Shown here piece by piece: positions 1 through 24,337 of a DNA stretch of 24,337 nucleotides; position 1 is the first letter of the stretch, and the number at the start of each line of letters is the position of its first letter. Source of the DNA: Lepidodermella squamata (Eukaryota; Animalia; Gastrotricha); assembly GCA_047495785.1 (NCBI GenBank), contig JBLDXI010000140.1:1-24337 (forward strand). Direction: 5' to 3'. The position numbers and the translations under genes were made by a program. Below the pieces are notes generated by a model. That model worked only from the letters and a program-made list of their open reading frames with translations. It searched no databases and was not told where the DNA came from.

Positions 1-50
1 AGTTTTCACGATCGCCTCGGCTGATAAGTATTTTATATTAACGATTTTAG

Positions 51-144
51 AATCATCTTGGAAACAGAACCAGTCAATCTTCTTGGCCGAGTAGCTGTCA
101 GGCATGATGAGACGGTACCCATCAGTGAACAAAGTGTTGCTCAG
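51..144 (+). CDS. COPZ: Coatomer subunit zeta (COPI), penultimate exon; gene starts upstream of the window
   Basis: ttttAG acceptor (49-50) and CAG|GTGCGT donor (145). Translates IILETEPVNLLGRVAVRHDETVPISEQSVAQ, matching the zeta-COP C-terminal region as I recall it ([30 protein letters not shown]). Too short for the ORF track. Confidence 0.8.
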
Positions 145-323
145 GTGCGTACTTACTTAGCCGTTTTGAAGGGGTTATCACATTTGCTGCGTTGTCAGTT
201 TTGAAGTTTGTTCAAAGGTTAGCATTATCCTAGTGAACAAGTTTTGCGCGTCCCCATTAACGCTATTTGTGGACAATTAACTCAAAAGCATCTTCGATTT
301 GTGTGCTTTCTAAAAATTTCTAG

Positions 324-371
324 GTTTTGTCATCCTTGTTAAATCCGCCGAAGTCTGGTCGAAGGTTTTGA
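324..371 (+). CDS. COPZ: Probable last exon of the COPZ gene (VLSSLLNPPKSGRRF*)
   Basis: tttctAG acceptor at 322-323, phase 0 compatible with the donor at 145. Begins VLSS, like the canonical VLQS; the remainder is divergent. Confidence 0.45.
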   Translation, partial: VLSSLLNPPKSGRRF

Positions 372-650
372 TGACTGATCGTGGAATGTAGTTACACAAA
401 TATGATGGGCAAAGGAAACGGAGGATCGATAATACACTTTTTCTTAACAGTGTGTTGTGATTTTGAAAATTTCAATACTAATGAAGACAGGTTTTAACCT
501 TAACTGTCCGCGTTATCGCCACGATGCGCTTGCGCCATGAATAAAAATTTTCAAGAAGAGACGCATTTTCTTTATATAATTGCCTCCAATTTCAACTTAA
601 AATTTTATACATCTCATTCGACTTGAAATCAGACATTGCGCCCGGGAAAG

Positions 651-993
651 GTACGATATTTCTCGCGATTGTTTTCGTTTAATTTAGTTTGCCGTAACAA
701 TTTGATTGCTATTCATGCTCGCCATGTGTTTTTATTTATTTTTGTTCTATTCTGTACAGGTCTTACAAACAGCAAAGGAGCAGCTCAAGTGGGGCATCCT
801 CAAGTAAAATATGACCTATTTATCCGAGCGTGATTGGATCTGCAATACCAAACTGGAGTTAACTATTTCGGTTGTCTGCTGCAATTGGTGTCATAAATTA
901 AAAGCTATAGTCGAAATGACTTAATCTCTCTGATCTGGAAAATAATTGAACTAGCGGGCTTGGGTCATTTCAGTTGTTTGCTCTTTTCTTTAG
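651..993 (+). other. Probable 5'UTR intron(s) of Rab6
   Basis: AAG|GTACGA donor at 651; pyrimidine-rich acceptors ending at 759 (tgtacAG) and 993 (ttttctttAG), the latter 31 nt before the Rab6 ATG. Confidence 0.35.
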
Positions 994-1024
994 GCTTGAT
1001 TATAAGCTTTAACTATTACCAACC

Positions 1025-1728
<704 letters not shown>

Positions 1729-3836
1729 TCATATTCCGAGAACGACCTTGCAATTTTTACAAAAATGAGTACAACCTAGAGTCTTTATAAATGATATAGA
1801 GGGAAAGACTGCGAATCTTGATAGTTAATATAAAGAGAGTTGAAAGGGCCGCCTTAATTTTGTGATGACATGGTCTTCCGTTATTTACTCATCTCACGAT
1901 GATGATATAGGTGTCATCAGCTGATTATGTTGTGTCGTATCTAACAGAAATTATACGCCGGTTCTTTGCTTTCTCCACTGACTTTTCGTTGTGCTCAAGC
2001 CGCCTTAATGTGTAATATAATAATAATTATAATGAAATTAGGAGATATTTGGCGCTGTAAACAAAGATACCCAGTAAAATTCGTCAAACGAATGAAAAAG
2101 CCAAACTGGTCTGGTCATCATCGTCAATATATTACGTGGAATGCTAGCTGACAATTGACTAATCTACATTCGCCCTGCTCGGTTCTTTTTATAGAAAATG
2201 ATCGGAAAATTGACATAACAGAGCGCTGTCTTCTCATTTGTCGTACCATGTCTCGTAGCGTTGTGGTCTATAACACAATTTTGCTGTTAAAATATTAATA
2301 TTTATATGAATATCTCGCATATATTTTGTTGTCCGCTTGTGTTATGTGTGCGTGTGTTAAAGATGACGATGACTCCTGACTATATAGGTTGCATAGCTGT
2401 ATTCAAGCTCATTTCTAGCATCTGCTAAGTACATAACTATTATTACTACTATTAATTCTTCAATAAGCTGAACTACTATTCTTGGCCATCTAACAAAACA
2501 AAACAAAACAACCAGAACAGTGCTTGCAATTATTTCGGTCGTTTATTATTATTACTATTATTATATTATATTATATGGGAATACTTCGTGTGCTGCGTGC
2601 TACGAATGAAGAACATTTCAATGAGTTGAAAAATGTTGTTTTCCATATCATGTAGAAATTATTTTGATTATACGTCAAAATTTCCAGCCAGAAAATGGGC
2701 CGGCGATCGCGCAGGAAGGTCGACGCTGTGTAAGTTCAATTAATCTATTAATTATCGCCTTGTACACTTCGAAGATTTTTCTACATAAAACAACATAAAA
2801 TCTTATGGTGTTTTTTCAGGGGGAAAACATCTTGCGTTGTCTGAAAAATTAATCAAATTATCACACTGAGAATCGTCGCAAATTTTAGAGATTTCGATAG
2901 AGTCGCGTTAGATATCACTGGGCCGTGCTGCCGCAACTTATGATAGCTGATTATTCCAGGCCAATTGAAGCACATCCAAGTTATAAATGGGAGAAAATTT
3001 CCGTCTGAAATCTATAATTTATTTTCTCTGTGAACATTTTTCCATGATTTTCCCCATCAACCTGAACTTCTAAGACATCTCGGCAACGCGGTGAAGTCTC
3101 CTCAACTATCGAGGATGAAAACATTCCATGCGTCTGAATCGTTGAAATTCAATTTATAATAGGAAAATTGGCCAAGAGCAGCCTGAAGAATGTTCAAACT
3201 CAAAACACCGGAAACCGAAGGACCTAAAATTGGAAAGTCGGGGAAAATTATAGATTTGAAAATGTGTCAACTCGGCACATTTCCTAGCATTTTGCTTGAA
3301 TTTCGCGCTCGTAACCCTCTCACTACTTGTCACCCATTTCATGTGATTTCTCTATGTTTCGGCACTCCGGTTTAGTTCAGGCATATTTCTAGGTCATAAA
3401 AGTAATTCGATTACTTCAATGGCCATTTAAAAGGTTGACAGGATAATGAGTGAAATGGATGTCATAGATCACACAGGTTTTAATTTTAAATCAGGATATT
3501 CTGTTACCGAAATTTTGAGAAGTATCAATTCAAGACGAAAATAGCAAATTTTGGCGATGTCGCATATTGAGAAAAAAATTTACTCGAGCACGTGCGTAGT
3601 ACAGCAGCGCTTCAGAACAACACACGCGCTTTCATTGTGAAGTTGACCTTAGATAGCCACAATTGACCGGCAGTAGATTTTGGATAAAAAACTCTTATCT
3701 AGAGATTGTTTTGCAAATGGCTAAATAATCTGCAAGGTGGGTATGCAAATTATTTCTCAAGGGGTCTTATGACCAGGGAATTTGATTTTATCTGTTGAAT
3801 TACGAATATTTATATTGAGATTATCTTTTCATTTAG

Positions 3837-4755
3837 AATTGGTGTTGCACTGGTTCTGGGCCTGATCGGGAGTGAGATGCGTCCAGACGGCACCATAGTG
3901 AGCTCGAAAATGCCCAGCAGACTCGAGCAAACCGACGCGGAGATCCAAGCCGCCGAGACGGCTGCGAACGGGCTCGTCGATCACGTGCTCATCGACGAGC
4001 TGGGTCGCATCAAGGGCCTCGACGAGAACATCGCGGGGCACCCGGAGAAGGGCGGCGTCATCCTGCCGGTCATGCCGATGCCCATGCCCAAATCGGCCAT
4101 CCGGCCAGACCACTGCTACAGCTCGTTCTCGGGCAAGGAAGTCAAGCAGGAGCCCGGCCTGCTGTGGCACGTACCCTCGGGCACCCCGACCGAGCACTAC
4201 CATGTGCCGGTGACTTACCCGGTCACCGACGTCCAGTACACCCCGACCGCCTTCGAGCTGCTGCACCAGCGCATCGGCATCGGAGACGCCCAGCACCAGG
4301 AATTACAGGCCGAGTTGGCCGATTTGGTTGCAGCGGTTCGCCCGGCTAGTGGCGAGCAATCGCCTCTGTCTTTCGAGTCGGGGGCTGAACAAAACCCTGA
4401 AGACCTTTTCCGCGATATTTTGGCCGAAAGTGCCGCTCAGTACGATGAACCGGCGCCGTTCTCGCCGTCGAAGGGGCTGTCGCTTGATGACCCCATGTCC
4501 ACTTTCCTTGACCCGACTCAGGACATTTTTCGCTGGATGGAACAAGGAGCTCTGTTCGATCCTGCCTTGGATGGCGCTTCCACTTCACAAACGTCACAGG
4601 ACTTCTTCGGCGCCCAGCCACAGTTTGGCGACTACTCAGGCCAACACGACCTTCCTGCCGCGGATACTGACCGCACTATTGATGAACTGCTGTACGCTCT
4701 CGAGAGCGAGGAGAAAAGTGTGCCTTTTGCTTCTGGATTCGGTGCTGCTAGCTCG
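3837..4755 (+). CDS. CNC-family bZIP transcription factor, upstream exon (acidic/Pro-rich region); true start uncertain (ATG 3877 or a further upstream exon)
   Basis: Acceptor ttttcatttAG at 3835-3836; frame open from 3838 (IGVALVLGLIGSEMRPD...); phase-0 donor TCG|GTAAGT at 4756 joins in frame to the bZIP exon at 5549. Confidence 0.8.
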
Positions 4756-5548
4756 GTAAGTTAACATTATCAGCTTAATAATTATTTCGCTAACTTGGTC
4801 GGACTATGCCGAGAATTGATTGAATCAAGTTGGAAGGCAAATTCCATAGTCTTATGTGGCAGATATAAGAGAAAAAGTGTCAACAAGGCAATTAGTCAGT
4901 TGGATGATGGACAATATTTTTTCTTCGGTAATAATTGAAAAAGTGTAGCAAATGTGGCCCCTTGATTGAAAACTCCATTTTTAGGTGTAGATTCTATTCC
5001 AAATTTTTCTCAAATGTCTCTTATACCTTGTGCCCAAACGATATTTTCTTCGATTATTTTGTAACCCTGAGTAATATTTGGTGGGGTTTACAATTCTGCC
5101 ATAGTCAATGAGTGGGGTAAAAACTGCTGCTAGGGAAATTATTAAAAGTTTATAGAGTTAACAACTCCCGTTATACCACCCAGAATATCTCAAACTTGGT
5201 GGAACCAATGAATCCACAATTTTCTGATTGGTCGGGTGGTCGGCGTATAACGTGGATTTTTTTTATCACTTTCACGCCTTTTTATAGCATTTCGGCCGTA
5301 AAACACGACCATTTCAAATTTTTGATTTGAGATCACTACGCGCACCGAATGTTCGTTCGCGAGTTGGGGATTGACTAAAGTTAAGGATTAAGGAAAAACT
5401 AGGATAAATATTACGGATTTGGAATGCCCTGCACTAGAGACCTATCGATAGGTTAACCCAAATAAATCAGTTCGCGGATTCAACATATTCAATTGAATTT
5501 TCTAATTATTTTAATATTTTCTGATATTCTAATAAACTGTTTCCATAG

Positions 5549-6268
5549 GATCCACAGAAATTTGAACCGATCTACACTGACTGCGACCCACCGGTTACTT
5601 TGATCCCGGAACCTGCTATTGGACTGAACTTGAACGCGACTCGAAAACGCCGATCTGAACCGTCATGGTCCTCAGGCGCTTCATCCTCCTCAAAATCGTG
5701 CGCCTTCGACTACCACAACCACACGTATGACGACGGAGCCGCTGAACGTAGAGCCCAGAAAGTGGCGCGGGCTCGTTGCGGCACCTCCAGTGATGAATCA
5801 TCTGCAAGCGGAGCTCTCCGCTGCAAAGATTTGCAAGACTTCGAAAGACTACGCATTCCGTTCACCTACGAGGCGGTCATCTCGGCCGAACCGAGCGCTT
5901 TCAACTCGATGGTGGGCGATCACAGACTGAATGACGAACAGAAGGCGTTGATGCGGGCGGCCCGCCGGCGGGCCAAGAACCGAAATGCGGCGCGGCAGTG
6001 TCGCCAACGACGTGTCGACGAGGTTGAGGACCTGGCTGACGAAGTGGAGGGTCTAGAGGACGAACGGAACCGACTTGTGTCGGAGATGGACGAAATCGAC
6101 GCGGAAATCGCGGCTCAGCGAGCGGCGAATGAACGGCTACAGGCGTACATCCTCGAGGTGTACTCGCAACAGCGCCCGCCCACCCTCCGCGACGCTGAAT
6201 ACCGCCTGCAGGCGAACCCTCGAAATGGATCATTCACCCTGGTCGAACAACGCGGCATCAGGGCTTGA
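5549..6268 (+). CDS. CNC-family (NF-E2/Nrf/Cap'n'collar-like) bZIP transcription factor, last exon with CNC domain, basic region and leucine zipper
   Basis: Acceptor ttccatAG at 5547-5548. LRIPFTYEAVI..FNSMV..LNDEQKALMRAARRRAKNRNAARQCRQRR is followed by a heptad zipper. The C-terminal EYRLQANPRNGSFTLV resembles the Nrf Neh3 end (EYSLQQTRDGNVFLV). Confidence 0.9.
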   Translation, partial: DPQKFEPIYTDCDPPVTLIPEPAIGLNLNATRKRRSEPSWSSGASSSSKSCAFDYHNHTYDDGAAERRAQKVARARCGTSSDESSASGALRCKDLQDFERLRIPFTYEAVISAEPSAFNSMVGDHRLNDEQKALMRAARRRAKNRNAARQCRQRRVDEVEDLADEVEGLEDERNRLVSEMDEIDAEIAAQRAANERLQAYILEVYSQQRPPTLRDAEYRLQANPRNGSFTLVEQRGIRA

Positions 6269-7618
6269 AGGAAACTATTGTAAATAATATGAGTGATAGA
6301 AAGATCTGATCGAATGATATGAGTGAGTAGAAATTTATTTTGTGGTGTTTGGACGGATCGTTGAGAAATCGACGATTATATAATATAATAATCTGAGTAG
6401 AGTGTGGTCTAACTCATTTCCCTATCTTTTCTCAGGCCATTTTATTATCATCAGATTTCATTGTTTATTGGCGTGGGCCGTTAAATTAACTATCGCATGT
6501 TTATAATCTTATTTATTGTTGAGTTTCAGGTGTTGTTTATGGGTCATTGAGAAATTTCACCACCACCACCACCTCTTCCGAAAACTTGCAGCTTTTCAAA
6601 AGCGATTGATTTGACCTTTGAATGAACGAAAACACACCTAATAATAATTATTTTCTCGCTATCTATCTCTGTTATTGTTATTTATGACGGGCTGATGAGA
6701 ACGATGGTCTCGTGGGAGGTTTTACCACCGAATTATCAGAAATATCTATTCAAGACAGGTTGGTTTTCCGGCCTTCGCTCACCTCGTTCTGTTATTGGTT
6801 CTTCTGGTTGTTGTGTATAACAAATGGGAAAAATTGCTCTTGTATTACCGTATTATATATCGTAATCATGATTTTAAAAATTGAAAAAGCATTAATCAAC
6901 TGTGAGCGTGATGATTTGCTTCGGTTGTGTGAGTGTTATTTGACTTGAAAAGCTGACTTGAAAAATTTCTTCGCACATTCTTGTCTTCTCTCTGGGAAAC
7001 AGAAAAATTCGGTTATTTATCTGGTGATTGATAATCTAATAATATACACTATTCATTATGTGCATTCGTTTTTGCTCCATTTTCTTTGGGTAGGTGTTAG
7101 CAACACGATTATAATTATAAGATCCCGTGAAAAATTCGAAGTGTTCCACAGTTATAATATGTGCTGCTGAGCCATTGCAATGTCTTGCATGATGATGATG
7201 ATTGACTGGTTTAATATATATTAACATCGTCCATACATCAACTTGCATCAGTTTGTCCGGTATATTTTTCTGATTTTTTTATTATAATTTAATAATTACT
7301 ATTCTTCTTCATTTGTGCTGTCTGTGTAAAGAAATATATCGCGACTAAAAAGCTAACAAAGCCACAACATTGGGCCTCGAGTTGTAACTGCCTCAGAATC
7401 CAAGTTAACAAACGATTACCAAAAAATATAATTAGCGGTATTGTCTCTAAAATCTACGCTTTAATGTGCATTCCTTGTAACTTGTAAGAAAAAATATTTG
7501 TGTTATTATTATTTAATGTATTGACACTTAGTTATAGTATTTATCCGATATATATTTGAAAAATCATAATAAAAAATTGAATTTATATGTTTTTGTGTTT
7601 TTTAGTCAAATTGTTTCG

Positions 7619-7637
7619 TATATATATATATATATAT
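7619..7637. repeat. (TA)9 microsatellite immediately 5' of the KANSL2 start codon
   Basis: Direct read; mirrored at 23029-23047. Confidence 0.9.
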
Positions 7638-7639
7638 GA

Positions 7640-10600
7640 ATGTCAGGCGGGCGAGGTTCGAGGAAGAGCCGGCAATCGCCCGAGGCGATATCACCCGGCA
7701 CTTGCGCCTACGCCGAGCGGCTCTGTTCACGTCCTGTGGCCAATCCTTCGACTACGATGTGTTGGGCCCACGTGAATAGCGCGGCTACGAGTCCTCAAAA
7801 ATCGCGAAAGTCAGCCGGCGCATCGCCCGCGAAAACAGTCACTAGCCCAGCCGCCTTGAAACTATCAAAACCGAATGTCAAATCCGAGTTAACAGACGCG
7901 GAACAGCTGCGGAAGTTGACCGAAAAATACGTGGCGCCTCAATTACCTCTGAAAACGGAACATGTGAAAGCCGATGAAGTAGCAGGTCGAGTGCCGAGCC
8001 GGTGTGAATATCTCGAGGCGCTTGGTGCAATCAATGTCGATGACCCAGCCGCCCAGTTCTGTTCTATGGAGGATTCGGCGTCTGACGATGGCTCAGACGA
8101 GTTCGGCAGTACAGCCCCGCTCGGCCACGCCGGCGTTTATTTGGCCGAGGAAGTTGTCTCAGTCGCGTGTGACCGGATGAAACAATTAAGGCGGCTCTAC
8201 GTCGAAGAGTTGAAGCACATATCTGTTCAGTTGAAAGTGTCTCGGCGGCGCTATTTAACCGAAGTAGCGAGGGATCGACGGCGGCGAATCGGTGACCTTT
8301 TGACTGACTATATCGCGACAACGCCCGAGCAGCAGAGGTGTCAGCGTTTGCTAGCGGCAATGCGGCGGCATCGGCGGCGATATCCGTCTGTTGACAATGT
8401 GATACGGTGGAATTTGCGGTCGAAATTAAAGCACGGCAAGGTGGGCCACGTGCAACAAGCAGCGTCAACGTCAAGCGACGCGGCGGTGGTGGATCAAAAC
8501 GCTCCTGTTAACACGACGTGCTCAGTTGTATCGTGCGATCAAAATGTACTACCTTTGACAAAGTATTGCTCAAAACGTAAGTTCAATGCTGAAATGACTG
8601 TAAATGAAAATTTGTAAACGAATTTATAAATTTTATCAATCTCAATAGAAATTCAAGGGAAAAATCTGAAGAGAGCTTAGCGAAAGAAACTAAAGGGAAA
8701 GTTGTCAAAAACGGACGAAGGTTTAGAGCGAAACCGGACTGACTTGGGAAATGAAACGTGGAAAATTACGCACTTAACTAGCTCTCAAGTCATTTTTGGG
8801 TACGAAATTCATACATTTTCGTATTAATAATTAAAGTAGAAATCTAAATCAGGGATTATTGGCCAATTCAAAAATTTCTCTTGTCAGGCAAGGAGCCTGT
8901 ATTTTTCTCCACATCTTTTATTACATTGACGTTTTCATGCGTAAACCGGACTACAAAATCGGCCCGGTTCCCTTATAGCGCAAAACAAGCGATACACTTT
9001 TACCTATTTTAATCGACTAATTTTCGGTCGGATTTGATTCGGTCTTCGGTGTACTTACATTCGGTTTTAAGTTGGCCGCGGAGGAAATTGTTAAGGATCT
9101 AAATACGTGCACCGCCTAAATCTGAGTTTCAGCACTAAATATCAGCATTCAGAGCCTATTACTGCTGTTAAGCCAAGACGAGGCTCTCAGGCATTTTCGA
9201 CCACGCGCCACGCATGCCTAGGTTTTCACCGTATTCCGTATAACCGCGATTATAGGTACATGACAGCTCAAGCCACCTTTATAGTGCTATGAGGTAGACT
9301 TACTGTTTCGATAAGTGTTTGAATTGAGATTAGGATATGATGAACTCGTGCCTTTAGGCTCGCTCGCATAGTTAAGAGAAATGCGGCATATTATGCAAAT
9401 GAGCCATGATGCTGAGATTATCATCACTTTATGATATACTATTTTGATTGGGAATCGTTAACTTGCCCACTGCCGGCAACTCTGCTCCGGAACGCTACCA
9501 CAGTATGGGCTGTATTTCGGTAGCAGTAAAATCGTGCTATTTGCCCACGATTAAGGTAGACTATTCAACATCCTGCCTTATTTGCATAAACCGTCGGAAC
9601 CGTCGAAATATAATTTTTATTCTATATTCATCGGAAACTCGTATTTAAGTTAATATTTAAATATTATTCCGATGGTTTAAGACATCGTTAAATCACGAAT
9701 GTGGAATGAGTCACGAGAATGTATCAATTGAACCTCAATTAAAAGTCAAGCACGACCACGGCTAGCTCGGCCACGCCCACGGCCTCGACCCCGAATGTTA
9801 GCAGTTGGATCTTCTTGTAAGATTACAGCTTGGCCGCGTCCACGGGCAGCGCTTCGAGTAATCACATGTATTGGCTCTGCTTCAAGCACAGGCTGAACCT
9901 TATGCCCACGCCCACGGCCTCGACCACCGATGATGGCAGGTGGCTCCACTTCAATCACAGGTGGAATGATGGCAGCTTGGACTCCTCCGCGACCACGCCC
10001 ACGGGGTCGGCCTAGGCCCCTGCCCCACATTTTTACAACAATTTGATGTTCTTCTCTATATTCAAACATGACTTATGACCGTCGGAAAATGCCTAAATCC
10101 TTACTTCCAAACCGCTTGCGAGCATTCATTTTCACATGAAAATAACACGTTAGCCGCAGTATTACGATACCAAATGACAGTTCTATGGCCGTAGTAATAT
10201 AACTAGCTCCGTCAGCCATTATCGCCAGGGGCATGTTAAATGGCATAAATAATTTCAAACCACGAAAAATCACTTGATACGCTCGGCCATTCTCATTGCT
10301 TGAAACACCAAGAAGAATTGGGTGAAACTTTCGATTTTTGTCAGACGAGCCGCCGATAAAAATCTTGTGGCCGCCATGGATGATTTTGTGAGTAGCATCG
10401 ATTTGAAAGCCGCGGGCATAGACCAATAGATGCTCGTTGTCCGGTTTACGCAACCGTGATTCGCACCATGCTCGAAGCTCGGCAGTTCCATAATTGCTGG
10501 CGCCAGATTCTGGGCGACTTGAATCTTTCGCTTGAACTGTTGCTTTAGGTTTGAACACATCTCGTGAGAGTCGTCTGATCGTTAGGCGAGGGTGATTCCG

Positions 10601-12299
10601 CTCGCGAATGAACTTCGGCCTATCGTTGATATGATCCAGCACATATTTGCGGACATCAGGCGTGATGACTGCCGTCGATGCCTCAGGCTGAACGTGTTTC
10701 CCGCCAGAGGATGGAACCGCTTGATCTGGCGACCACTTAAGAACAGCCTTGTGCGGATAGATCTTGGCGCCAGACTTGTGGAACGGCAGACGTAGTAGCA
10801 GGTCTCCTTGTTGTTGCCGCTCTTCGTGGTGTCAATCCACAGGTCAGGATAGGTTTGCTTCACGTAATCCTTCGACTCTTGGTAAGAGATTGCGTACCGC
10901 AATGACTCGAAGTTATCCCATTCATTCTCGACATTGGGCCAAATCGCATCTTCCCCATCCTCAACAATACCAGGGTCAGCGCTCTCCTCATCATCAAACT
11001 CAGATTCGTCGAAATTCATCCTCATAAGCTTTTGATTCTATGTATTCATCATCGGTCTGACTGTCAGACTCGCAATTTCTCAACAAATCCATCATCGAAG
11101 ATGAAACGAAAGAATTATTAAATAAGTAAGGCTAGGTTATAGCTAGCTGTTTCAAATCAGGCCACGCGTATTCCGACAGCTTAAGCTCGTGTTCCAATGT
11201 AATAATGCAGTAAAATGACTTTTCGATAGTTTAATTTAGTTTATACACCCTTTTTATACATTTCCGACGTTTTAATTAAAAATGGTTCGCGGAAAGAAAT
11301 TATTAGTTTTATGGAATGATGGGTGCCCCAGGTCGATTGGGTGATCTTCTAAGTAACTGCTTCCAGAGGCGTCGCTAGAGTGGCAAGATGACATTCCTTT
11401 CCACGAATTAAGTGGTGGCTTTATATATTTAGTGTTACAGATGTTTATTTTTATTTTGTCTTGAATAGGATTAGTTAGAGCGGCTTTCTAGTACTGGAGT
11501 CACTATTTTAGTATGTGCAGTTGGCACACCCAATTCTTTATATATTTCGATTATAATCAATTTCCGATTATTTCAATGTTGGTATTTTCGCGAAAACACC
11601 GAAATAAAAGACTCTTTCAGCTGACCTGTCCTGCATACCTGGAATAATATTGCTCATAAATAAATAAGATCAAACCAAAAATTAGTACGTATGTAGATAA
11701 AAATCAAAATCATCTGATCGCACAAAATTTATACCGATGGAAAGTACTGATCAAGGGGATCTCGAAATTAAAGAAATCTTTCATGTCGGATTTTTTCGGG
11801 TGAGTTATGGCAGTTTCAATTTTTTTCCGAGATGACATTTTTGTGGCCGCACCCAAATATATACAGTCATAGTATCTAGGAAGGGAATATAAAATAATAA
11901 TTAAATTAAAAAGCTCATTTTAATTTAAATTTTTTTTTCATTTCAGATATTATGCTCGATCGAAGGCAACTGCTATTTTCGAAATGCCCCGGTTTCTTCA
12001 TCGCTCCGTGCGAGAAGCCGCCAGAAAGCGGCGATTTGCCTACAACACCTTCAAGCTTGGACGCTTCGAAGCCACTCCGCCACATCGACTGCGGTCGGTT
12101 GGTTGTTCAAAGCCCGAATCCTCCGCGAGGTCTCTCGAACTCGCCGGTCGCTTCTACTTCGATTTCAACCCGGAGTAGCGGAAATTCGCCGTCTCCGAGT
12201 GTCATGGCATCGGACACTTCTTCTTCAATGCTGTGCTCGATGCACCGGGCTCTGGTGCAAATTTCGTCGACACCTCCGGTGACTAAATCGGCAAAGTGA
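7640..12299 (+). CDS. KANSL2: KAT8 regulatory NSL complex subunit 2, copy 1; exons 7640-8576 and 11947-12299, 429 aa
   Basis: PLGHAGVYLAEEVVSVACDRMKQLRRLYVEELKHISVQLKVSRRRYL matches the KANSL2 signature (PLKHAGVYTAEEV..KLIRLQSLYIDQFKRL). The phase-1 intron C|GTAAGT (8577) .. tttcAG|AT (11946) rebuilds CSVVSCDQNVLPLTKYCSK-H-IMLDRRQLLFSKC, a zf-C3Hc3H finger. Confidence 0.9.
9746..11095 (-). mobile_element. Decayed Mutator-like (MULE) transposase in the KANSL2 intron, copy 1
   Basis: FQIDATHK (first D), FHPILLGVSSNE, IMADGASYITTAI (second D), RLTCYFHV (CxxH). Frameshifts, an in-frame stop and no visible region for the catalytic E. TIR/TSD not found. Confidence 0.85.
10555..10571 (+). other. 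Probable untrimmed PacBio barcode bc1003 + T overhang (technical artefact)
   Basis: ACACATCTCGTGAGAGT(C) replaces TACCT of the mirror arm (20107-20111 rc). Identity to bc1003 is from memory of the PacBio barcode set. Confidence 0.85.
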
Positions 12300-12399
12300 T
12301 TGATTGTGATTGATTGAAGATTTTGTTTTTGTTATTCTGACAGCCGTCCTCGCACTAGTTTTCAACAATGCATAATAATAATTTGATTTTAACGCCGAA

Positions 12400-12405
12400 A
12401 ATAAA
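12400..12405 (+). terminator. Probable polyadenylation signal of KANSL2
   Basis: AATAAA ~100 nt after the stop codon, followed by T-rich sequence. Confidence 0.5.
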
Positions 12406-12522
12406 ACTGCCAGTTCTTTTTTTGAAATTGTGTTTTGATTCGAAAAACTCCACCTTAATGAAATTTGCAGTTACCCGTGAACATGGAGAATAGAAGAGTT
12501 ATCTTTGTGAAAAAATGAATTA

Positions 12523-13428
12523 CTGTAAGCCGGTACAACTTTGAACACCCAAGTCCATGCAAACTTCGATGTGATGTGTAAATTAAACAGATGCGATTTT
12601 GGTCGGGTTTTCAACGTAGTTCGACTGGGGCCGCCCACCGTAACACCCTGATGTTTTCTCGGAAATTCGCAAGCGTAAGGATTTGGCAAGGGGTACCCCA
12701 AAAGTACAACTTTGAGCACCAACATTTCGTGAAATAAAAAATCCACCTTTATTCGTGCGCAGAGAATTTCGCGTGAAATTTGCGATTTTCACCTCACTGG
12801 TGTGCTTCATTCAGGAAAAAACGACGCGTGAAACGTATGATATGTAGCTTGGCACTCACCGCAGTGAAAATATGAAATAAATATATCCCAGGCGACTTCG
12901 CAGAAGTTGTGAGCACTCATCATTAAGTTTCATTTATGCCGCTTGTTAATATTATGAAAATAAATAATGCTGCATTATCATTTAGCCAATTGTAACAATT
13001 AGCGTACATGATTTTAGTTCATTCGATTGCTGCTGCGAGAAGCGACACTAATGCCAAGTGTGTGAGAACGTAGTGCGTGAAAATTGAAAAATAATAAGTT
13101 ATCAACATTTTTATGGTGGACTTTTTACTCGGTATTTGAGATTAATTCGTTGCCATTACGAGATAGGAAGTCGTTTTTCTGATCACTACGTTCTCTATGG
13201 AGCATAGTAGAGTTCAGTAAATGCGAACGAAGTCTATAAAAAACTTGAAACATCATACTCAAAGTCAAAATAATGAATTTCTATCGTTAGAAAATGGCAA
13301 AATGTTAGATCTCAACGAGACCTATATTCAGTAGAATTCCCAAGCGGTAGATTCCCACGGTTTCAGAGAAAAGCTGATTTGCGTGAAATGTTCAAAGTTG
13401 TACCTGTTCAAGTTGTACTGGATTACGG
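12523..13428. mobile_element. Non-autonomous Tc1/mariner-superfamily (pogo/Tc2-like) element, copy 1
   Basis: TA on both sides. Imperfect TIRs CTGTAAGCCGGTACAACTTTGAACA vs (rc) CCGTAATCCAGTACAACTTGAACA; the GTACAACTTTGA motif recurs subterminally and near 12704. No transposase ORF. Confidence 0.7.
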
Positions 13429-13566
13429 TATTGCGTTTTTTTATAAAGTGGGGGCACGTTAATTAATTGTGATAATCGAAAAACATGCTATTGCGAAATG
13501 AAGCACACAATTCAATTCTCGGACGAATTTCTGTTCCAAAAATTCCATCATTTAAGACAAAATTGA

Positions 13567-14354
13567 TCACATGGTTATCCAATAGCATTCACGTTACCGT
13601 CGCAATATACAGCGTCTCTTAAAAGCACAATCGTTTTAAATAAGCACTCAAAGGATGTTACAAGGCCGGTTTTTCGGCCACGGAACACTGATACTACTAT
13701 TGTCAGAATCGTCGATGAATTGCCGACTTCGTCGCCAGTTCTCAGCGACCTTGCGCTGATGCGTGGCTTCGGTTCCAGCGAAAACCGCCTCATCTGGAAA
13801 CCCAACAAAGCAAAATTCACCGAGCGCTTGATTTTACTATGCTGCTATTAGCCTTGTTTTTCTCATCCTGAAACAAACGATGGAATCGATTTCCAAGCTG
13901 AGCTTATTTTCGTTGACGATTTAGTAGCTATTAGGAACATGAAACGGGTTCGAGAGTTTTTGAAGCTAAGCCAATCAAGCATAATCGCGATATTCTTGAA
14001 AAATAGGGAACAATTCATTCTGAACAAAAACGCATCCAAATTTCGAACATTTGCCCCGATTCTATTTCTTCCTCTTCCGTCTCTCATCTTCCTTTTTTCT
14101 ATCTGTTCTTCCATCTGTTCTTCCACTCTTAGTCTTCCTTATTCTTCTCTTAAAAATTTCTGGGTAGTTTTCTGAAGTTGCGAAGCATAGAAGATGCGAA
14201 GATTATACTGTTATCCATAGCTTCAAAAATTATTGGTTCGTCAGAGTTCATCAAAGATTCTCGAGAAGGACAGAAACTTGTTCGAAATGCTACGTGTCTT
14301 CGAACAGCTAAATACATTTTTGTGATATATTTCACCCTTCAACAGAAAAAATAA
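13567..14354 (+). pseudogene. Coding-like sequence of unknown family, interrupted
   Basis: + frame open 13567-14175 except one TAG (13849-13851); a second open frame 14154-14354 follows a CT-rich tract. The minus-strand ORFs here read like antisense shadows. Confidence 0.3.
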
Positions 14355-14445
14355 TAGTAAAAATTCGGGTGGGTTTTTTTTGGGACTCTGACGGCCCTGT
14401 CGCGTAGAGCCGGATCTCTCTAAAATATCTTAATTTAATTTTAAT

Positions 14446-14507
14446 AGATTTCTTTAATGTCTGAAGATGACGTCAGATGACGTCGAAACGTCACAATCTC
14501 AAATAAA
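14446..14507 (+). ncRNA. Minimal type I hammerhead ribozyme motif, Penelope-like element pLTR type
   Basis: TGT-CTGAAGA-T-GACGTC-AGAT-GACGTC-GAAA-CG-TC-ACA: full core, 6-bp helix II, palindromic ACGT helix III, TGT/ACA helix I, and AATAAA at 14502-14507. Predicted cleavage after C14492. Confidence 0.75.
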
Positions 14508-14680
14508 ACAGGAAAATGGTCGCAAATTCTTCGCGCTGTTGTTCACATTAAAAATTACAAAAAACAAACATCTTATCAAATTTTAATAGTAATGTTAATT
14601 TCGCCGCCCCCTCCGATTTCTGGGTCTCACTTCTGCCAACTATATAAAATCGACCACTTCAGTCTCTTGTTTAGGGATTA

Positions 14681-14955
14681 CCGTCAACTGGGGTGACTTT
14701 ACCCAGTGGGGTGACTTCGACGTACCAAAAATGGGGTTACGCGGGGTGAATAAATTTTTCGAAATTTTCTAATGTCCTTAGATCTGTTGTATTGATGTGC
14801 ATTGTACACATCTAGACTGGCCTTTCCTTGGGCTATCCAACGGTACCCCACTCGCGGGGTATTTACCTTACAATCTTTGATTTTTGGTACGCCAAAGTCA
14901 CCCCATTTTGGTACGTCGAAGTGACCCCACTGCCCAAAGTCACCCAAGTTGACGG
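14681..14955. mobile_element. MITE (275 bp), Tc1/mariner superfamily, TA target duplication
   Basis: ~57-bp TIRs (14681-14737 / 14900-14955) beginning CCGTCAACT(G/T)GGGTGACTTT; TA at 14679-14680 and 14956-14957; internal GGGGTGACTT subrepeats. Confidence 0.9.
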
Positions 14956-15034
14956 TATTTCTTGGGCCTAAATTTTAGATGAAAATTTTGCTTTTTTTAA
15001 GGCGGATTTCTTAATATTTTTTAATTAATTATAG

Positions 15035-16345
15035 CGCGTGGCAGAGCAGACCAGCAAGCGAGAAATCGGTCAAACTTTGGATTTATTCCTCCTTATCTGC
15101 TGCGTGACATTTGCTGAGTGGAACTTGACCATGTTCGAAAGCAGCAATGACTATGAAAGTGAAACGGCCGCAACCTCTGAAAAGTTGTTCAAGGCTACGC
15201 TCGATGCCTTTCTACTTGTCGTCACAGATTTTATAGGGAAAATCAAGCCACTCATTTCATTTGCCTACGAACACTGTACCGTGTCAGTCGTAGCTGCTAT
15301 GCGGTTCCGTTACCTCAGCGAGAAAATGATGACTGCAGAGCTTGAACACCGCGACCAAGTTGCCCGAGAATTCTTTGCAATCGATCATTTGGTACGACTA
15401 GGTCTTGTAAATTTGCCTGAAATTCGTTTGCAGAAAATCGTCGAATGCCCCGCTTTTGCCGATAATTTCAGCTTCGGCTTGCTGAAATACGTTGCGTTCG
15501 CCTATCGATACGGTTGGCAGATTGAAGGATCTTCTAACGAGGAGCATTTGCAAGGCGCACTACAGCTTATTGAGAAACTTTTGTATTCCTCGAAGACATA
15601 TTTCGCGAAAAAATTTATCAAGCTTATCGGAAGTGAATTGGCTCACCAGGGACCACCTGGCCACTCAGAAATGACGTTTTGGAACGCTTTGTTCGAGCTG
15701 AAATACGACGAATATGACGAAATCGACTCGCCAGATTGCGCGGCGAGACTGTTGCGGTTTTTGGACAGACCTGGTCGCGAGATGATGTTGAAGAAAAATC
15801 GAGAAGGCCTGCGCCGCATTGGCGTCAAGTTTCTCTGCGATATCATTGAAGATATAGAAGAAGGAATGCTTGGATTCGGTAGCGAGGGCGAGCCTAGCTT
15901 TCCTAAGGAAAATTCGGCCCTGGGACTCGACGCAATAGTCGGCAGTAGATTGCCGATGATGTCTCTTAAAGAACTGATGACCGACCCGGCGCAGCCTCAA
16001 TTTAGCTTCCCTCCAAGTACTGTCAAAGATCTGGCTAGCAAGCTTGTTCAAATGATGAAATGTGATGCGTCCGGCGAGATGGATCGAGTTATGGCAGAAA
16101 TGGCTGCGCTTTTCGGCGGAAGAGCTGCTATGTTTTTCAATAAGAACCAGCTGTCGTCAACCAGCCAAATATCGTGCGTTGCCACCGGCATTTTGACGGG
16201 CAATCTCTTCATCAACGATGCTGAATTTCGCAACCAGTTGCGCAAGACCAAGGGCGTGAAGCAAGCCGTAGCTAATTTCAAAAAGAATCTGGATGTTCTT
16301 ACGAAATCTATAGCCGCTGCCAAGCAGGTTCCTATGAAACACTGA
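15035..16345 (+). CDS. Uncharacterised protein, probably a terminal exon (436 codons), likely mainly helical
   Basis: Long uninterrupted ORF with protein-like composition, directly preceded by an AT-rich acceptor (aattatAG at 15033-15034). No family motif recognised. Confidence 0.75.
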   Translation, partial: RVAEQTSKREIGQTLDLFLLICCVTFAEWNLTMFESSNDYESETAATSEKLFKATLDAFLLVVTDFIGKIKPLISFAYEHCTVSVVAAMRFRYLSEKMMTAELEHRDQVAREFFAIDHLVRLGLVNLPEIRLQKIVECPAFADNFSFGLLKYVAFAYRYGWQIEGSSNEEHLQGALQLIEKLLYSSKTYFAKKFIKLIGSELAHQGPPGHSEMTFWNALFELKYDEYDEIDSPDCAARLLRFLDRPGREMMLKKNREGLRRIGVKFLCDIIEDIEEGMLGFGSEGEPSFPKENSALGLDAIVGSRLPMMSLKELMTDPAQPQFSFPPSTVKDLASKLVQMMKCDASGEMDRVMAEMAALFGGRAAMFFNKNQLSSTSQISCVATGILTGNLFINDAEFRNQLRKTKGVKQAVANFKKNLDVLTKSIAAAKQVPMKH

Positions 16346-17247
16346 TCCTCGATATAATTGCATTCAGTATTGCCTAATCCAGCTTTTTGACATTTTCTTC
16401 GACTGTTTCGGAACTTTCAACTTGTTTCCCAATTTAATTTCAATAATCAAAAGTGAGAGTAAAATAAACAAATGCAATTTGTCGAAAGCTGATTGGCTCG
16501 TCAGTGATTCAAACCACCAGAATTTGTCTATAGAAAAGGAAGAGGGGGAAGATGGAAGAAGAAGAAGAACAGATAGAAAAAAGGAAGATGAGAGACGGAA
16601 GAGGAAGAAATAGAATCGGGGCAAATGTTCGAAATTTGGATGCGTTTTTGTTCAGAATGAATTGTTCCCTATTTTTTCAAGAATATCGCGATTATGCTTG
16701 ATTGGCTTAGCTTCAAAAACTCTCGAACCCGTTTCATGTTCCTAATAGCTACTAAATCGTCAACGAAAATAAGCTCAGCTTGGAAATCGATTCCATCGTT
16801 TGTTTCAGGATGAGAAAAACAAGGCTAATAGCAGCATAGTAAAATCAAGCGCTCGGTGAATTTTGCTTTGTTGGGTTTCCAGATGAGGCGGTTTTCGCTG
16901 GAACCGAAGCCACGCATCAGCGCAAGGTCGCTGAGAACTGGCGACGAAGTCGGCAATTCATCGACGATTCTGACAATAGTAGTATCAGTGTTCCGTGGCC
17001 GAAAAACCGGCCTTGTAACATCCTTTGAGTGCTTATTTAAAACGATTGTGCTTTTAAGAGACGCTGTATATTGCGACGGTAACGTGAATGCTATTGGACA
17101 ACCATGTGATCAATTTTGTCTTAAATGATGGAATTTTTGGAACAGAAATTCGTCCGAGAATTGAATTGTGTGCTTCATTTCGCAATAGCATGTTTTTCGA
17201 TTATCACAATTAATTAACGTGCCCCCACTTTATAAAAAAACGCAATA

Positions 17248-18153
17248 CCGTAATCCAGTACAACTTGAACAGGTACAACTTTGAACATTTCACGCAAATC
17301 AGCTTTTCTCTGAAACCGTGGGAATCTACCGCTTGGGAATTCTACTGAATATAGGTCTCGTTGAGATCTAACATTTTGCCATTTTCTAACGATAGAAATT
17401 CATTATTTTGACTTTGAGTATGATGTTTCAAGTTTTTTATAGACTTCGTTCGCATTTACTGAACTCTACTATGCTCCATAGAGAACGTAGTGATCAGAAA
17501 AACGACTTCCTATCTCGTAATGGCAACGAATTAATCTCAAATACCGAGTAAAAAGTCCACCATAAAAATGTTGATAACTTATTATTTTTCAATTTTCACG
17601 CACTACGTTCTCACACACTTGGCATTAGTGTCGCTTCTCGCAGCAGCAATCGAATGAACTAAAATCATGTACGCTAATTGTTACAATTGGCTAAATGATA
17701 ATGCAGCATTATTTATTTTCATAATATTAACAAGCGGCATAAATGAAACTTAATGATGAGTGCTCACAACTTCTGCGAAGTCGCCTGGGATATATTTATT
17801 TCATATTTTCACTGCGGTGAGTGCCAAGCTACATATCATACGTTTCACGCGTCGTTTTTTCCTGAATGAAGCACACCAGTGAGGTGAAAATCGCAAATTT
17901 CACGCGAAATTCTCTGCGCACGAATAAAGGTGGATTTTTTATTTCACGAAATGTTGGTGCTCAAAGTTGTACTTTTGGGGTACCCCTTGCCAAATCCTTA
18001 CGCTTGCGAATTTCCGAGAAAACATCAGGGTGTTACGGTGGGCGGCCCCAGTCGAACTACGTTGAAAACCCGACCAAAATCGCATCTGTTTAATTTACAC
18101 ATCACATCGAAGTTTGCATGGACTTGGGTGTTCAAAGTTGTACCGGCTTACAG
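17248..18153. mobile_element. Non-autonomous Tc1/mariner-superfamily element, mirror copy
   Basis: Mirror of 12523-13428. Confidence 0.7.
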
Positions 18154-18376
18154 TAATTCATTTTTTCACAAAGATAACTCTTCTATTCTCCATGTTCACG
18201 GGTAACTGCAAATTTCATTAAGGTGGAGTTTTTCGAATCAAAACACAATTTCAAAAAAAGAACTGGCAGTTTTATTTTCGGCGTTAAAATCAAATTATTA
18301 TTATGCATTGTTGAAAACTAGTGCGAGGACGGCTGTCAGAATAACAAAAACAAAATCTTCAATCAATCACAATCAA

Positions 18377-21300
18377 TCACTTTGCCGATTTAGTCACCGG
18401 AGGTGTCGACGAAATTTGCACCAGAGCCCGGTGCATCGAGCACAGCATTGAAGAAGAAGTGTCCGATGCCATGACACTCGGAGACGGCGAATTTCCGCTA
18501 CTCCGGGTTGAAATCGAAGTAGAAGCGACCGGCGAGTTCGAGAGACCTCGCGGAGGATTCGGGCTTTGAACAACCAACCGACCGCAGTCGATGTGGCGGA
18601 GTGGCTTCGAAGCGTCCAAGCTTGAAGGTGTTGTAGGCAAATCGCCGCTTTCTGGCGGCTTCTCGCACGGAGCGATGAAGAAACCGGGGCATTTCGAAAA
18701 TAGCAGTTGCCTTCGATCGAGCATAATATCTGAAATGAAAAAAAAATTTAAATTAAAATGAGCTTTTTAATTTAATTATTATTTTATATTCCCTTCCTAG
18801 ATACTATGACTGTATATATTTGGGTGCGGCCACAAAAATGTCATCTCGGAAAAAAATTGAAACTGCCATAACTCACCCGAAAAAATCCGACATGAAAGAT
18901 TTCTTTAATTTCGAGATCCCCTTGATCAGTACTTTCCATCGGTATAAATTTTGTGCCGATCAGATGATTTTGATTTTTATCTACATACGTACTAATTTTT
19001 GGTTTGATCTTATTTATTTATGAGCAATATTATTCCAGGTATGCAGGACAGGTCAGCTGAAAGAGTCTTTTATTTCGGTGTTTTCGCGAAAATACCAACA
19101 TTGAAATAATCGGAAATTGATTATAATCGAAATATATAAAGAATTGGGTGTGCCAACTGCACATACTAAAATAGTGACTCCAGTACTAGAAAGCCGCTCT
19201 AACTAATCCTATTCAAGACAAAATAAAAAATAAACATCTGTAACACTAAATATATAAAGCCACCACTTAATTCGTGGAAAGGAATGTCATCTTGCCACTC
19301 TAGCGACGCCTCTGGAAGCAGTTACTTAGAAGATCACCCAATCGACCTGGGGCACCCATCATTCCATAAAACTAATAATTTCTTTCCGCGAACCATTTTT
19401 AATTAAAACGTCGGAAATGTATAAAAAGGGTGTATAAACTAAATTAAACTATCGAAAAGTCATTTTACTGCATTATTACATTGGAACACGAGCTTAAGCT
19501 GTCGGAATACGCGTGGCCTGATTTGAAACAGCTAGCTATAACCTAGCCTTACTTATTTAATAATTCTTTCGTTTCATCTTCGATGATGGATTTGTTGAGA
19601 AATTGCGAGTCTGACAGTCAGACCGATGATGAATACATAGAATCAAAAGCTTATGAGGATGAATTTCGACGAATCTGAGTTTGATGATGAGGAGAGCGCT
19701 GACCCTGGTATTGTTGAGGATGGGGAAGATGCGATTTGGCCCAATGTCGAGAATGAATGGGATAACTTCGAGTCATTGCGGTACGCAATCTCTTACCAAG
19801 AGTCGAAGGATTACGTGAAGCAAACCTATCCTGACCTGTGGATTGACACCACGAAGAGCGGCAACAACAAGGAGACCTGCTACTACGTCTGCCGTTTCCA
19901 CAAGTCTGGCGCCAAGATCTATCCGCACAAGGCTGTTCTTAAGTGGTCGCCAGATCAAGCGGTTCCATCCTCTGGCGGGAAACACGTTCAGCCTGAGGCA
20001 TCGACGGCAGTCATCACGCCTGATGTCCGCAAATATGTGCTGGATCATATCAACGATAGGCCGAAGTTCATTCGCGAGCGGAATCACCCTCGCCTAACGA
20101 TCAGACAGGTATCAAACCTAAAGCAACAGTTCAAGCGAAAGATTCAAGTCGCCCAGAATCTGGCGCCAGCAATTATGGAACTGCCGAGCTTCGAGCATGG
20201 TGCGAATCACGGTTGCGTAAACCGGACAACGAGCATCTATTGGTCTATGCCCGCGGCTTTCAAATCGATGCTACTCACAAAATCATCCATGGCGGCCACA
20301 AGATTTTTATCGGCGGCTCGTCTGACAAAAATCGAAAGTTTCACCCAATTCTTCTTGGTGTTTCAAGCAATGAGAATGGCCGAGCGTATCAAGTGATTTT
20401 TCGTGGTTTGAAATTATTTATGCCATTTAACATGCCCCTGGCGATAATGGCTGACGGAGCTAGTTATATTACTACGGCCATAGAACTGTCATTTGGTATC
20501 GTAATACTGCGGCTAACGTGTTATTTTCATGTGAAAATGAATGCTCGCAAGCGGTTTGGAAGTAAGGATTTAGGCATTTTCCGACGGTCATAAGTCATGT
20601 TTGAATATAGAGAAGAACATCAAATTGTTGTAAAAATGTGGGGCAGGGGCCTAGGCCGACCCCGTGGGCGTGGTCGCGGAGGAGTCCAAGCTGCCATCAT
20701 TCCACCTGTGATTGAAGTGGAGCCACCTGCCATCATCGGTGGTCGAGGCCGTGGGCGTGGGCATAAGGTTCAGCCTGTGCTTGAAGCAGAGCCAATACAT
20801 GTGATTACTCGAAGCGCTGCCCGTGGACGCGGCCAAGCTGTAATCTTACAAGAAGATCCAACTGCTAACATTCGGGGTCGAGGCCGTGGGCGTGGCCGAG
20901 CTAGCCGTGGTCGTGCTTGACTTTTAATTGAGGTTCAATTGATACATTCTCGTGACTCATTCCACATTCGTGATTTAACGATGTCTTAAACCATCGGAAT
21001 AATATTTAAATATTAACTTAAATACGAGTTTCCGATGAATATAGAATAAAAATTATATTTCGACGGTTCCGACGGTTTATGCAAATAAGGCAGGATGTTG
21101 AATAGTCTACCTTAATCGTGGGCAAATAGCACGATTTTACTGCTACCGAAATACAGCCCATACTGTGGTAGCGTTCCGGAGCAGAGTTGCCGGCAGTGGG
21201 CAAGTTAACGATTCCCAATCAAAATAGTATATCATAAAGTGATGATAATCTCAGCATCATGGCTCATTTGCATAATATGCCGCATTTCTCTTAACTATGC

Positions 21301-23026
21301 GAGCGAGCCTAAAGGCACGAGTTCATCATATCCTAATCTCAATTCAAACACTTATCGAAACAGTAAGTCTACCTCATAGCACTATAAAGGTGGCTTGAGC
21401 TGTCATGTACCTATAATCGCGGTTATACGGAATACGGTGAAAACCTAGGCATGCGTGGCGCGTGGTCGAAAATGCCTGAGAGCCTCGTCTTGGCTTAACA
21501 GCAGTAATAGGCTCTGAATGCTGATATTTAGTGCTGAAACTCAGATTTAGGCGGTGCACGTATTTAGATCCTTAACAATTTCCTCCGCGGCCAACTTAAA
21601 ACCGAATGTAAGTACACCGAAGACCGAATCAAATCCGACCGAAAATTAGTCGATTAAAATAGGTAAAAGTGTATCGCTTGTTTTGCGCTATAAGGGAACC
21701 GGGCCGATTTTGTAGTCCGGTTTACGCATGAAAACGTCAATGTAATAAAAGATGTGGAGAAAAATACAGGCTCCTTGCCTGACAAGAGAAATTTTTGAAT
21801 TGGCCAATAATCCCTGATTTAGATTTCTACTTTAATTATTAATACGAAAATGTATGAATTTCGTACCCAAAAATGACTTGAGAGCTAGTTAAGTGCGTAA
21901 TTTTCCACGTTTCATTTCCCAAGTCAGTCCGGTTTCGCTCTAAACCTTCGTCCGTTTTTGACAACTTTCCCTTTAGTTTCTTTCGCTAAGCTCTCTTCAG
22001 ATTTTTCCCTTGAATTTCTATTGAGATTGATAAAATTTATAAATTCGTTTACAAATTTTCATTTACAGTCATTTCAGCATTGAACTTACGTTTTGAGCAA
22101 TACTTTGTCAAAGGTAGTACATTTTGATCGCACGATACAACTGAGCACGTCGTGTTAACAGGAGCGTTTTGATCCACCACCGCCGCGTCGCTTGACGTTG
22201 ACGCTGCTTGTTGCACGTGGCCCACCTTGCCGTGCTTTAATTTCGACCGCAAATTCCACCGTATCACATTGTCAACAGACGGATATCGCCGCCGATGCCG
22301 CCGCATTGCCGCTAGCAAACGCTGACACCTCTGCTGCTCGGGCGTTGTCGCGATATAGTCAGTCAAAAGGTCACCGATTCGCCGCCGTCGATCCCTCGCT
22401 ACTTCGGTTAAATAGCGCCGCCGAGACACTTTCAACTGAACAGATATGTGCTTCAACTCTTCGACGTAGAGCCGCCTTAATTGTTTCATCCGGTCACACG
22501 CGACTGAGACAACTTCCTCGGCCAAATAAACGCCGGCGTGGCCGAGCGGGGCTGTACTGCCGAACTCGTCTGAGCCATCGTCAGACGCCGAATCCTCCAT
22601 AGAACAGAACTGGGCGGCTGGGTCATCGACATTGATTGCACCAAGCGCCTCGAGATATTCACACCGGCTCGGCACTCGACCTGCTACTTCATCGGCTTTC
22701 ACATGTTCCGTTTTCAGAGGTAATTGAGGCGCCACGTATTTTTCGGTCAACTTCCGCAGCTGTTCCGCGTCTGTTAACTCGGATTTGACATTCGGTTTTG
22801 ATAGTTTCAAGGCGGCTGGGCTAGTGACTGTTTTCGCGGGCGATGCGCCGGCTGACTTTCGCGATTTTTGAGGACTCGTAGCCGCGCTATTCACGTGGGC
22901 CCAACACATCGTAGTCGAAGGATTGGCCACAGGACGTGAACAGAGCCGCTCGGCGTAGGCGCAAGTGCCGGGTGATATCGCCTCGGGCGATTGCCGGCTC
23001 TTCCTCGAACCTCGCCCGCCTGACAT
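18377..23026 (-). CDS. KANSL2: KANSL2, mirror copy; exons 23026-22090 and 18729-18377
   Basis: Translations identical to copy 1 in the ORF track; same splice sites. Confidence 0.88.
19583..20920 (+). mobile_element. Decayed MULE transposase, mirror copy (cleaner sequence)
   Basis: Acidic N-terminus MMDLLRNCESDSQTDDEY, frameshift near 19662, YYVCRFHK..H (WRKY/GCM-like Zn-domain remnant), frameshift near 20140-20160, MULE core, TAA at 20591, then an in-frame RG-rich tail. Confidence 0.85.
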
Positions 23027-24337
23027 TCATATATATATATATATATACGAAACAATTTGACTAAAAAACACAAAAACATATAAATTCAATTTTTTATTAT
23101 GATTTTTCAAATATATATCGGATAAATACTATAACTAAGTGTCAATACATTAAATAATAATAACACAAATATTTTTTCTTACAAGTTACAAGGAATGCAC
23201 ATTAAAGCGTAGATTTTAGAGACAATACCGCTAATTATATTTTTTGGTAATCGTTTGTTAACTTGGATTCTGAGGCAGTTACAACTCGAGGCCCAATGTT
23301 GTGGCTTTGTTAGCTTTTTAGTCGCGATATATTTCTTTACACAGACAGCACAAATGAAGAAGAATAGTAATTATTAAATTATAATAAAAAAATCAGAAAA
23401 ATATACCGGACAAACTGATGCAAGTTGATGTATGGACGATGTTAATATATATTAAACCAGTCAATCATCATCATCATGCAAGACATTGCAATGGCTCAGC
23501 AGCACATATTATAACTGTGGAACACTTCGAATTTTTCACGGGATCTTATAATTATAATCGTGTTGCTAACACCTACCCAAAGAAAATGGAGCAAAAACGA
23601 ATGCACATAATGAATAGTGTATATTATTAGATTATCAATCACCAGATAAATAACCGAATTTTTCTGTTTCCCAGAGAGAAGACAAGAATGTGCGAAGAAA
23701 TTTTTCAAGTCAGCTTTTCAAGTCAAATAACACTCACACAACCGAAGCAAATCATCACGCTCACAGTTGATTAATGCTTTTTCAATTTTTAAAATCATGA
23801 TTACGATATATAATACGGTAATACAAGAGCAATTTTTCCCATTTGTTATACACAACAACCAGAAGAACCAATAACAGAACGAGGTGAGCGAAGGCCGGAA
23901 AACCAACCTGTCTTGAATAGATATTTCTGATAATTCGGTGGTAAAACCTCCCACGAGACCATCGTTCTCATCAGCCCGTCATAAATAACAATAACAGAGA
24001 TAGATAGCGAGAAAATAATTATTATTAGGTGTGTTTTCGTTCATTCAAAGGTCAAATCAATCGCTTTTGAAAAGCTGCAAGTTTTCGGAAGAGGTGGTGG
24101 TGGTGGTGAAATTTCTCAATGACCCATAAACAACACCTGAAACTCAACAATAAATAAGATTATAAACATGCGATAGTTAATTTAACGGCCCACGCCAATA
24201 AACAATGAAATCTGATGATAATAAAATGGCCTGAGAAAAGATAGGGAAATGAGTTAGACCACACTCTACTCAGATTATTATATTATATAATCGTCGATTT
24301 CTCAACGATCCGTCCAAACACCACAAAATAAATTTCT

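Follow-up and report, generated by a model that had tools for sequence, protein, structure and literature searches.

Contig JBLDXI010000140.1 of the Lepidodermella squamata assembly (hereafter C140) reads as a large palindrome, in which 18 bases of one arm stand where the mirror arm has five. The window analysed here is the whole of this contig, 24,337 bases in length, and the locus raises the question whether the 18 bases, and the palindrome around them, belong to the genome of the animal. We hold it to be highly likely that the 18-mer is the PacBio barcode bc1003 plus a T, left at the start of a read, and that the 'palindrome' is an artefact of assembly, derived from a chimeric read that folds back on itself.

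Identity of the insertion

The 18 bases at positions 10555–10572 consist of ACACATCTCGTGAGAG followed by TC and are flanked in the window sequence by ...ggtttga and gtctgatcg.... The same flanks enclose TACCT in the mirror arm (20107–20111, minus strand, read as the reverse complement), and the same five bases are found at 365670–365674 of contig C21. The 18-mer is absent from both of these homologous copies. In the inverted-repeat table, the arms 6329–10554/20112–24337 have a coordinate sum of 30666 and the arms 10573–10783/19896–20106 a sum of 30679, a net shift of 13 that results from 18 bases in the left arm against five in the mirror arm and in C21. The first-pass annotation had described this replacement and the change of mirror sum, with which the inverted-repeat arms agree. 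One correction is needed: to the right of the barcode the arms differ further, in one substitution and in four indels of a single base each.

The 16-mer ACACATCTCGTGAGAG occurs once in the window, with 0.01 copies expected from shuffles. At 10555–10570 on the plus strand it matches PacBio barcode bc1003 (bcAd1003) of the published adapter list exactly, in 16 out of 16 bases, as the first-pass annotation had stated. The bcAd1003 oligo in that list reads ...GAGAGAT + ACACATCTCGTGAGAG + T, with ACACATCTCGTGAGAG as the barcode (bioRxiv 10.1101/2023.02.19.526140), and the identical 16-mer was used as 'bc3' in a second paper (PMC11480859). Within the insertion, the barcode occupies 10555–10570, and the T at 10571 corresponds to the 3′ overhang of the adapter, whose oligo ends in barcode plus T; the earlier remark that overhang adapters add a T was correct. 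The C at 10572 is probably the second C of the native TACCT, the next T having been lost. Errors of this kind at read starts are found at other sites too, with a deletion at the read start in locus L077.

Barcode copies across the assembly

The assembly (121,234,032 bases in 151 contigs) was searched for further copies of the 16-mer, as the first-pass annotation had proposed, with at most one mismatch allowed. A total of 190 copies were found, 159 forward and 31 reverse, where simple arithmetic gives about 0.06 chance copies of one 16-mer on both strands (2 × 121 Mb). The reversed pattern of the 16-mer, included as a control, had no matches in the assembly. Control barcode bc1002 had none in the assembly either, and a general barcode-like repeat was rejected on this result. 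All 50 copies inspected were directly followed by a T, with flanks that were unrelated between copies.

Positions were examined for 100 places among the matches listed, on contigs C1–C65. Among these listed matches, the barcode was located at bases 1–16 in 22 of the first 65 contigs, and all 18 reverse copies that could be checked coincided precisely with the final 16 bases of the contig. The internal copies inspected (n = 25, the window's own and 24 others) were all in forward orientation. Internal copies were over-represented in repeats and within a few tens of kb of contig starts, places which offer little support for read correction; examples are C9:6216, C11:3958 and C13:1117, and at least six copies are present in the 194-kb rDNA contig C53. 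This distribution is the signature of contigs built from concatenated prefixes of barcode-keeping reads. An exact barcode, a T overhang, enrichment at contig ends on the corresponding strand and absence from the homologous native sequence were all found, as expected of a bcAd1003 remnant. That an untrimmed barcode at a read start had entered the consensus, as was suggested before, is supported by the 190 copies, their positions at contig base 1 and at contig ends, and the T in 50 out of 50.

The SMRTbell hairpin had no matches in the assembly with up to two mismatches allowed, by which an internal adapter from an unsplit read was rejected. In the assembly, only the part of the adapter that stays on reads after consensus calling is present, namely the barcode part. 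The copy at C13:1117 (locus L023, C13:1–2632) lies within a CCCTAA/TTAGGG telomere-type repeat near the contig start, and the end of contig C33 (locus L062) terminates in such a repeat too.

Seven sites, four in rDNA and three in satellite sequence, were compared with a barcode-free homologous repeat unit. At these seven sites the barcode plus T overwrites about as many native bases as it brings in (net 0 to +3), against which the window is atypical with 18 bases replacing five (net +13). A start-based layout rule together with indels of the barcode-bearing read (read B, see below) was considered as the source of the +13 and rejected, since it explains at most +4. At the rDNA locus L072 (C53:41568–44583), 89 bases (locus positions 1501–1589) replace 91 native bases and consist of the barcode, its T and 76 bases that repeat, in inverted orientation, sequence located 133 bases downstream.

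Inverted sequence was found beside other barcodes as well. An inverted-repeat arm starts within 30 bases of the barcode at five of the 24 other internal sites; when anchors were drawn at random 2000 times in the same loci, the mean was 0.37 and the count never exceeded 3. At two further loci, L008 and L017, palindromes are centred just after the barcode. In this library, inverted pieces recur at the ends of molecules. Across L006, L008, L017, L021, L025 and L029, inverted copies of 53–370 bases directly follow the barcode or a palindrome is centred just past it, which suggests chimeric read starts that were written into large contigs.

Relation of the window to contig C21

The window aligns to C21 in two parts. 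Positions 1–14130 align to C21:355116–369232 on the plus strand and positions 14106–24337 to C21:371675–361444 on the minus strand. The segment 1–10554 (plus strand), assigned to a normal read ('read A'), is identical to C21:355116–365669. It is followed, after the barcode, by 10573–14418 (plus strand), assigned to the prefix of a barcode-bearing chimeric read ('read B'). The fold-back junction is situated at 14106–14111, where a 6-base microhomology, TTCTTC, joins the end of the plus-strand C21 sequence at 369217 to the start of the minus-strand C21 sequence at 371675. The 'spacer' (14112–16563, minus strand) is the loop of the fold-back, 2.45 kb in length and single copy, and corresponds, as reverse complement, to what directly follows the arm on C21. 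The right arm (16564–24337, minus strand) is the reverse complement of the C21:361444–369217 region, and the near-identical arms measure about 7.8 kb.

On C21 the order is one arm, the 'spacer' in the orientation opposite to that of C140, and then other sequence. A second arm is absent from C21, so that the main-assembly locus holds one arm only, and the junction-spanning sequence was found in the assembly on C140 only. Judged by these alignments, C140 is a redundant, partly inverted copy of C21:355116–371675. The 2.45-kb loop lies between short and imperfect inverted copies of a motif resembling TTCTTCCATCT, and C140 has no barcode at either contig end.

The loop contains a short element (14679–14957) with 57-base terminal inverted repeats that are 88% complementary. 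More than 100 related copies of this element, with 80–97% identity, are spread over many contigs, and it looks like a MITE family. The loop also holds an ORF of 435 aa (15038–16345, plus strand), which is present once on C21 as well and had no Pfam match with an E value of 0.01 or lower.

Comparison of C140 with C21 revealed no differences in 1–10554 and in 14419–24337, together 20.4 kb. Seven differences other than the barcode were found, all of them in 10573–14418, the 3.85 kb after the barcode. They comprise four homopolymer deletions of one base each (10782, 11448, 11720 and 13999), one substitution (13577) and two indels (14381 and 14418). Such clustering of differences just after the barcode is as expected for one uncorrected chimeric read, and the sequence from 14419 to the contig end probably derives from a normal corrected read. 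If read B went uncorrected, no other read agreed with it from end to end, which points to single-read support of the barcode join. The first-pass annotation had proposed very thin read support at this place; this is supported indirectly, by the uncorrected homopolymer errors that follow the barcode.

Public run X1, in the form of Logan contigs that differ from the window by about 2% and have 0.54 of words in common with it, agrees with the C21 state at two of the 1-base indels (10781 and 13998). Among the listed pieces of this run, none spans 10555–10572 or the junction at 14106–14111. Over 9800–15300 it is about 2% different and carries its own alleles only, and it is the only public run found with this stretch. 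This divergence, with own alleles only, indicates that the run was made from a different individual or strain, belonging to the same species or to one very close to it.

The insertion also affects the predicted genes. In the undisturbed arm, two separate frames are found, an ORF of 247 aa (19653–20396, plus strand) in its own frame and a MULE ORF of 126 aa (20213–20593, plus strand) in another frame, the latter matching the MULE transposase domain PF10551 with an E value of 2.3e-7. In the barcode-bearing arm, the shift of +13 joins ...DHINDRPKFIRERNHPRLTIR of the 247-aa ORF frame to the MULE frame, which creates a spurious ORF of 189 aa (10073–10642, minus strand; PF10551, E 6.5e-7), of which the residues RLSRDV are encoded by the barcode. 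The fused MULE ORF at 10073–10642 had already been called spurious, and the barcode-free arm with its two frames bears this out. The deletion at 10782 truncates the upstream ORF to 147 aa. Adjoining the MULE ORF in both arms (9746–10069, minus strand, and 20597–20920, plus strand) is an RGRGRG-rich ORF of 107 aa, inside which a repeat of about 46 bases recurs at a spacing of 135 bases.

Origin of the palindrome

The proposed course of events starts from a library prepared with PacBio barcoded overhang adapter bcAd1003, of which the consensus reads would have been assembled with the barcodes still on, the hairpin being removed from the reads and barcode plus T kept. With the same adapter on both ends, a read from either strand would begin with barcode plus T and end with A plus the reverse-complement barcode. 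The assembler, by a layout rule that we infer, would write a contig as successive non-overlapped 5′ read prefixes followed by the whole last read. This layout would leave forward barcodes at the contig start and at internal joins, and a reverse barcode only at the very end; unaligned barcode plus T overhangs would survive internally where read correction had too little support. Position 10555 of the window would be such a join, with read A giving 1–10554 and read B starting with barcode plus T at 10555. Read B would then be a fold-back chimera, running forward along C21 to 369217, switching strand at the 6-base microhomology to 371675 and running back. Joined on both sides to normal reads of the same locus (read A, and a read C for the rest), it would yield the 24.3-kb C140, with the 'palindrome', the 'spacer' and the fused MULE ORF as by-products. 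The fold-back itself would have originated in vitro.

Comparable errors have been described. Sim et al. (2022, HiFiAdapterFilt, PMC8864876) trace three classes of error to adapter contamination of HiFi reads, namely errant insertions, duplicate contigs of short length and inverted duplicates that adjoin the adapter, and C140 combines all three. Unlike in that study, the residue here is a 16-base barcode plus T only, with no hairpin matches, and 190 sites are involved as opposed to rare events. In strand-displacement amplification, more than 85% of chimeras were inverted with an intervening deletion, and more than 70% were primed at 2–21 complementary bases (Lasken and Stockwell, PMC1855051); this type of amplification is also known to give palindromic PacBio reads (10.1101/173872). 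C140 resembles an MDA-type inverted chimera in its forward run, its jump ahead and its copy back, with a single-copy stretch in between (the 2.45-kb loop) and six complementary bases (TTCTTC). The likeness concerns the mechanism only, and amplification of this library is conjecture.

Points against an artefact are the net +13, the lack of a barcode at the ends of C140, and the rarity of fold-back reads in standard HiFi data, as ordinary PacBio HiFi libraries are reported to contain almost none (PMC12870357). This rarity implies that the library may have been amplified or may otherwise have been unusual. It is unlikely, in our estimate, that only the barcode is an artefact and that the inverted duplication exists in the animal, as a fold-back rearrangement at TTCTTC, heterozygous or somatic, that through low coverage ended up in a small separate contig. 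Microhomology-mediated strand switching occurs in cells too, the imperfect inverted TTCTTCCATCT-like copies flank the loop, and natural fold-back inverted duplications share with C140 the near-identical arms (about 7.8 kb here), the spacer (here 2.45 kb) and the microhomology where the strand turns. Unlike in natural ones, however, one arm and the spacer are the C21 locus and the second arm is found only on the 24-kb C140, to which the junction is unique. The arm differences, moreover, are of the sequencing type, homopolymer errors that begin at the barcode; no substitution relative to C21 lies outside the stretch after the barcode, so that C140 is not a diverged allele. The uncorrected errors and the surviving barcode point to support by a single molecule, and inverted pieces directly after barcodes, at molecule ends in several unrelated loci, fit a library process and not locus-specific biology. 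We consider it quite improbable that the fold-back in the barcode-bearing read was a rare somatic or germline strand switch at TTCTTC in vivo, in which case the many fold-back palindromes of this assembly would reflect an unusually high cellular fold-back rate and not library chemistry.

Mis-joins at adapter sequence are a described class of error (PMC8864876), which would make the barcode the mark of a chimeric ligation of two unrelated molecules at 10555. This is refuted by the sequence to either side of the barcode, which is colinear with C21 (365669 | 365675); neither a hairpin nor a reverse-complement barcode lies beside the barcode at 10555, and the actual breakpoint follows 3.5 kb later, at 14106–14111, leaving such a mis-join very improbable. 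A native 18-mer, either a polymorphic indel or a piece of a transposon, would match the barcode by coincidence, and the one argument for it is that the contig contains it. Against it stand the 190 copies where about 0.06 are expected genome-wide, the unrelated flanks and following T of the inspected copies, the ties of position and strand to contig ends, and the absence of the 18-mer from the mirror arm and C21. For practical purposes a native origin is refuted, and its probability is close to nil.

The 18-mer and the fused MULE ORF are artefacts, and the 18-kb palindrome is very probably one. About 190 sites of this assembly carry at least 17 non-genomic bases, which usually overwrite native sequence and sometimes bring along an inverted piece. 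Such insertions break exons and invent ORFs, and they are a quality flag for this assembly. As the hairpin part is absent, screens based on UniVec adapter entries would probably miss the barcode. The biological interest of the feature is low and its value lies in quality control: the barcode marks read starts at no extra cost, exposes single-read chimeric joins and can be used to re-examine the palindromes in this assembly.
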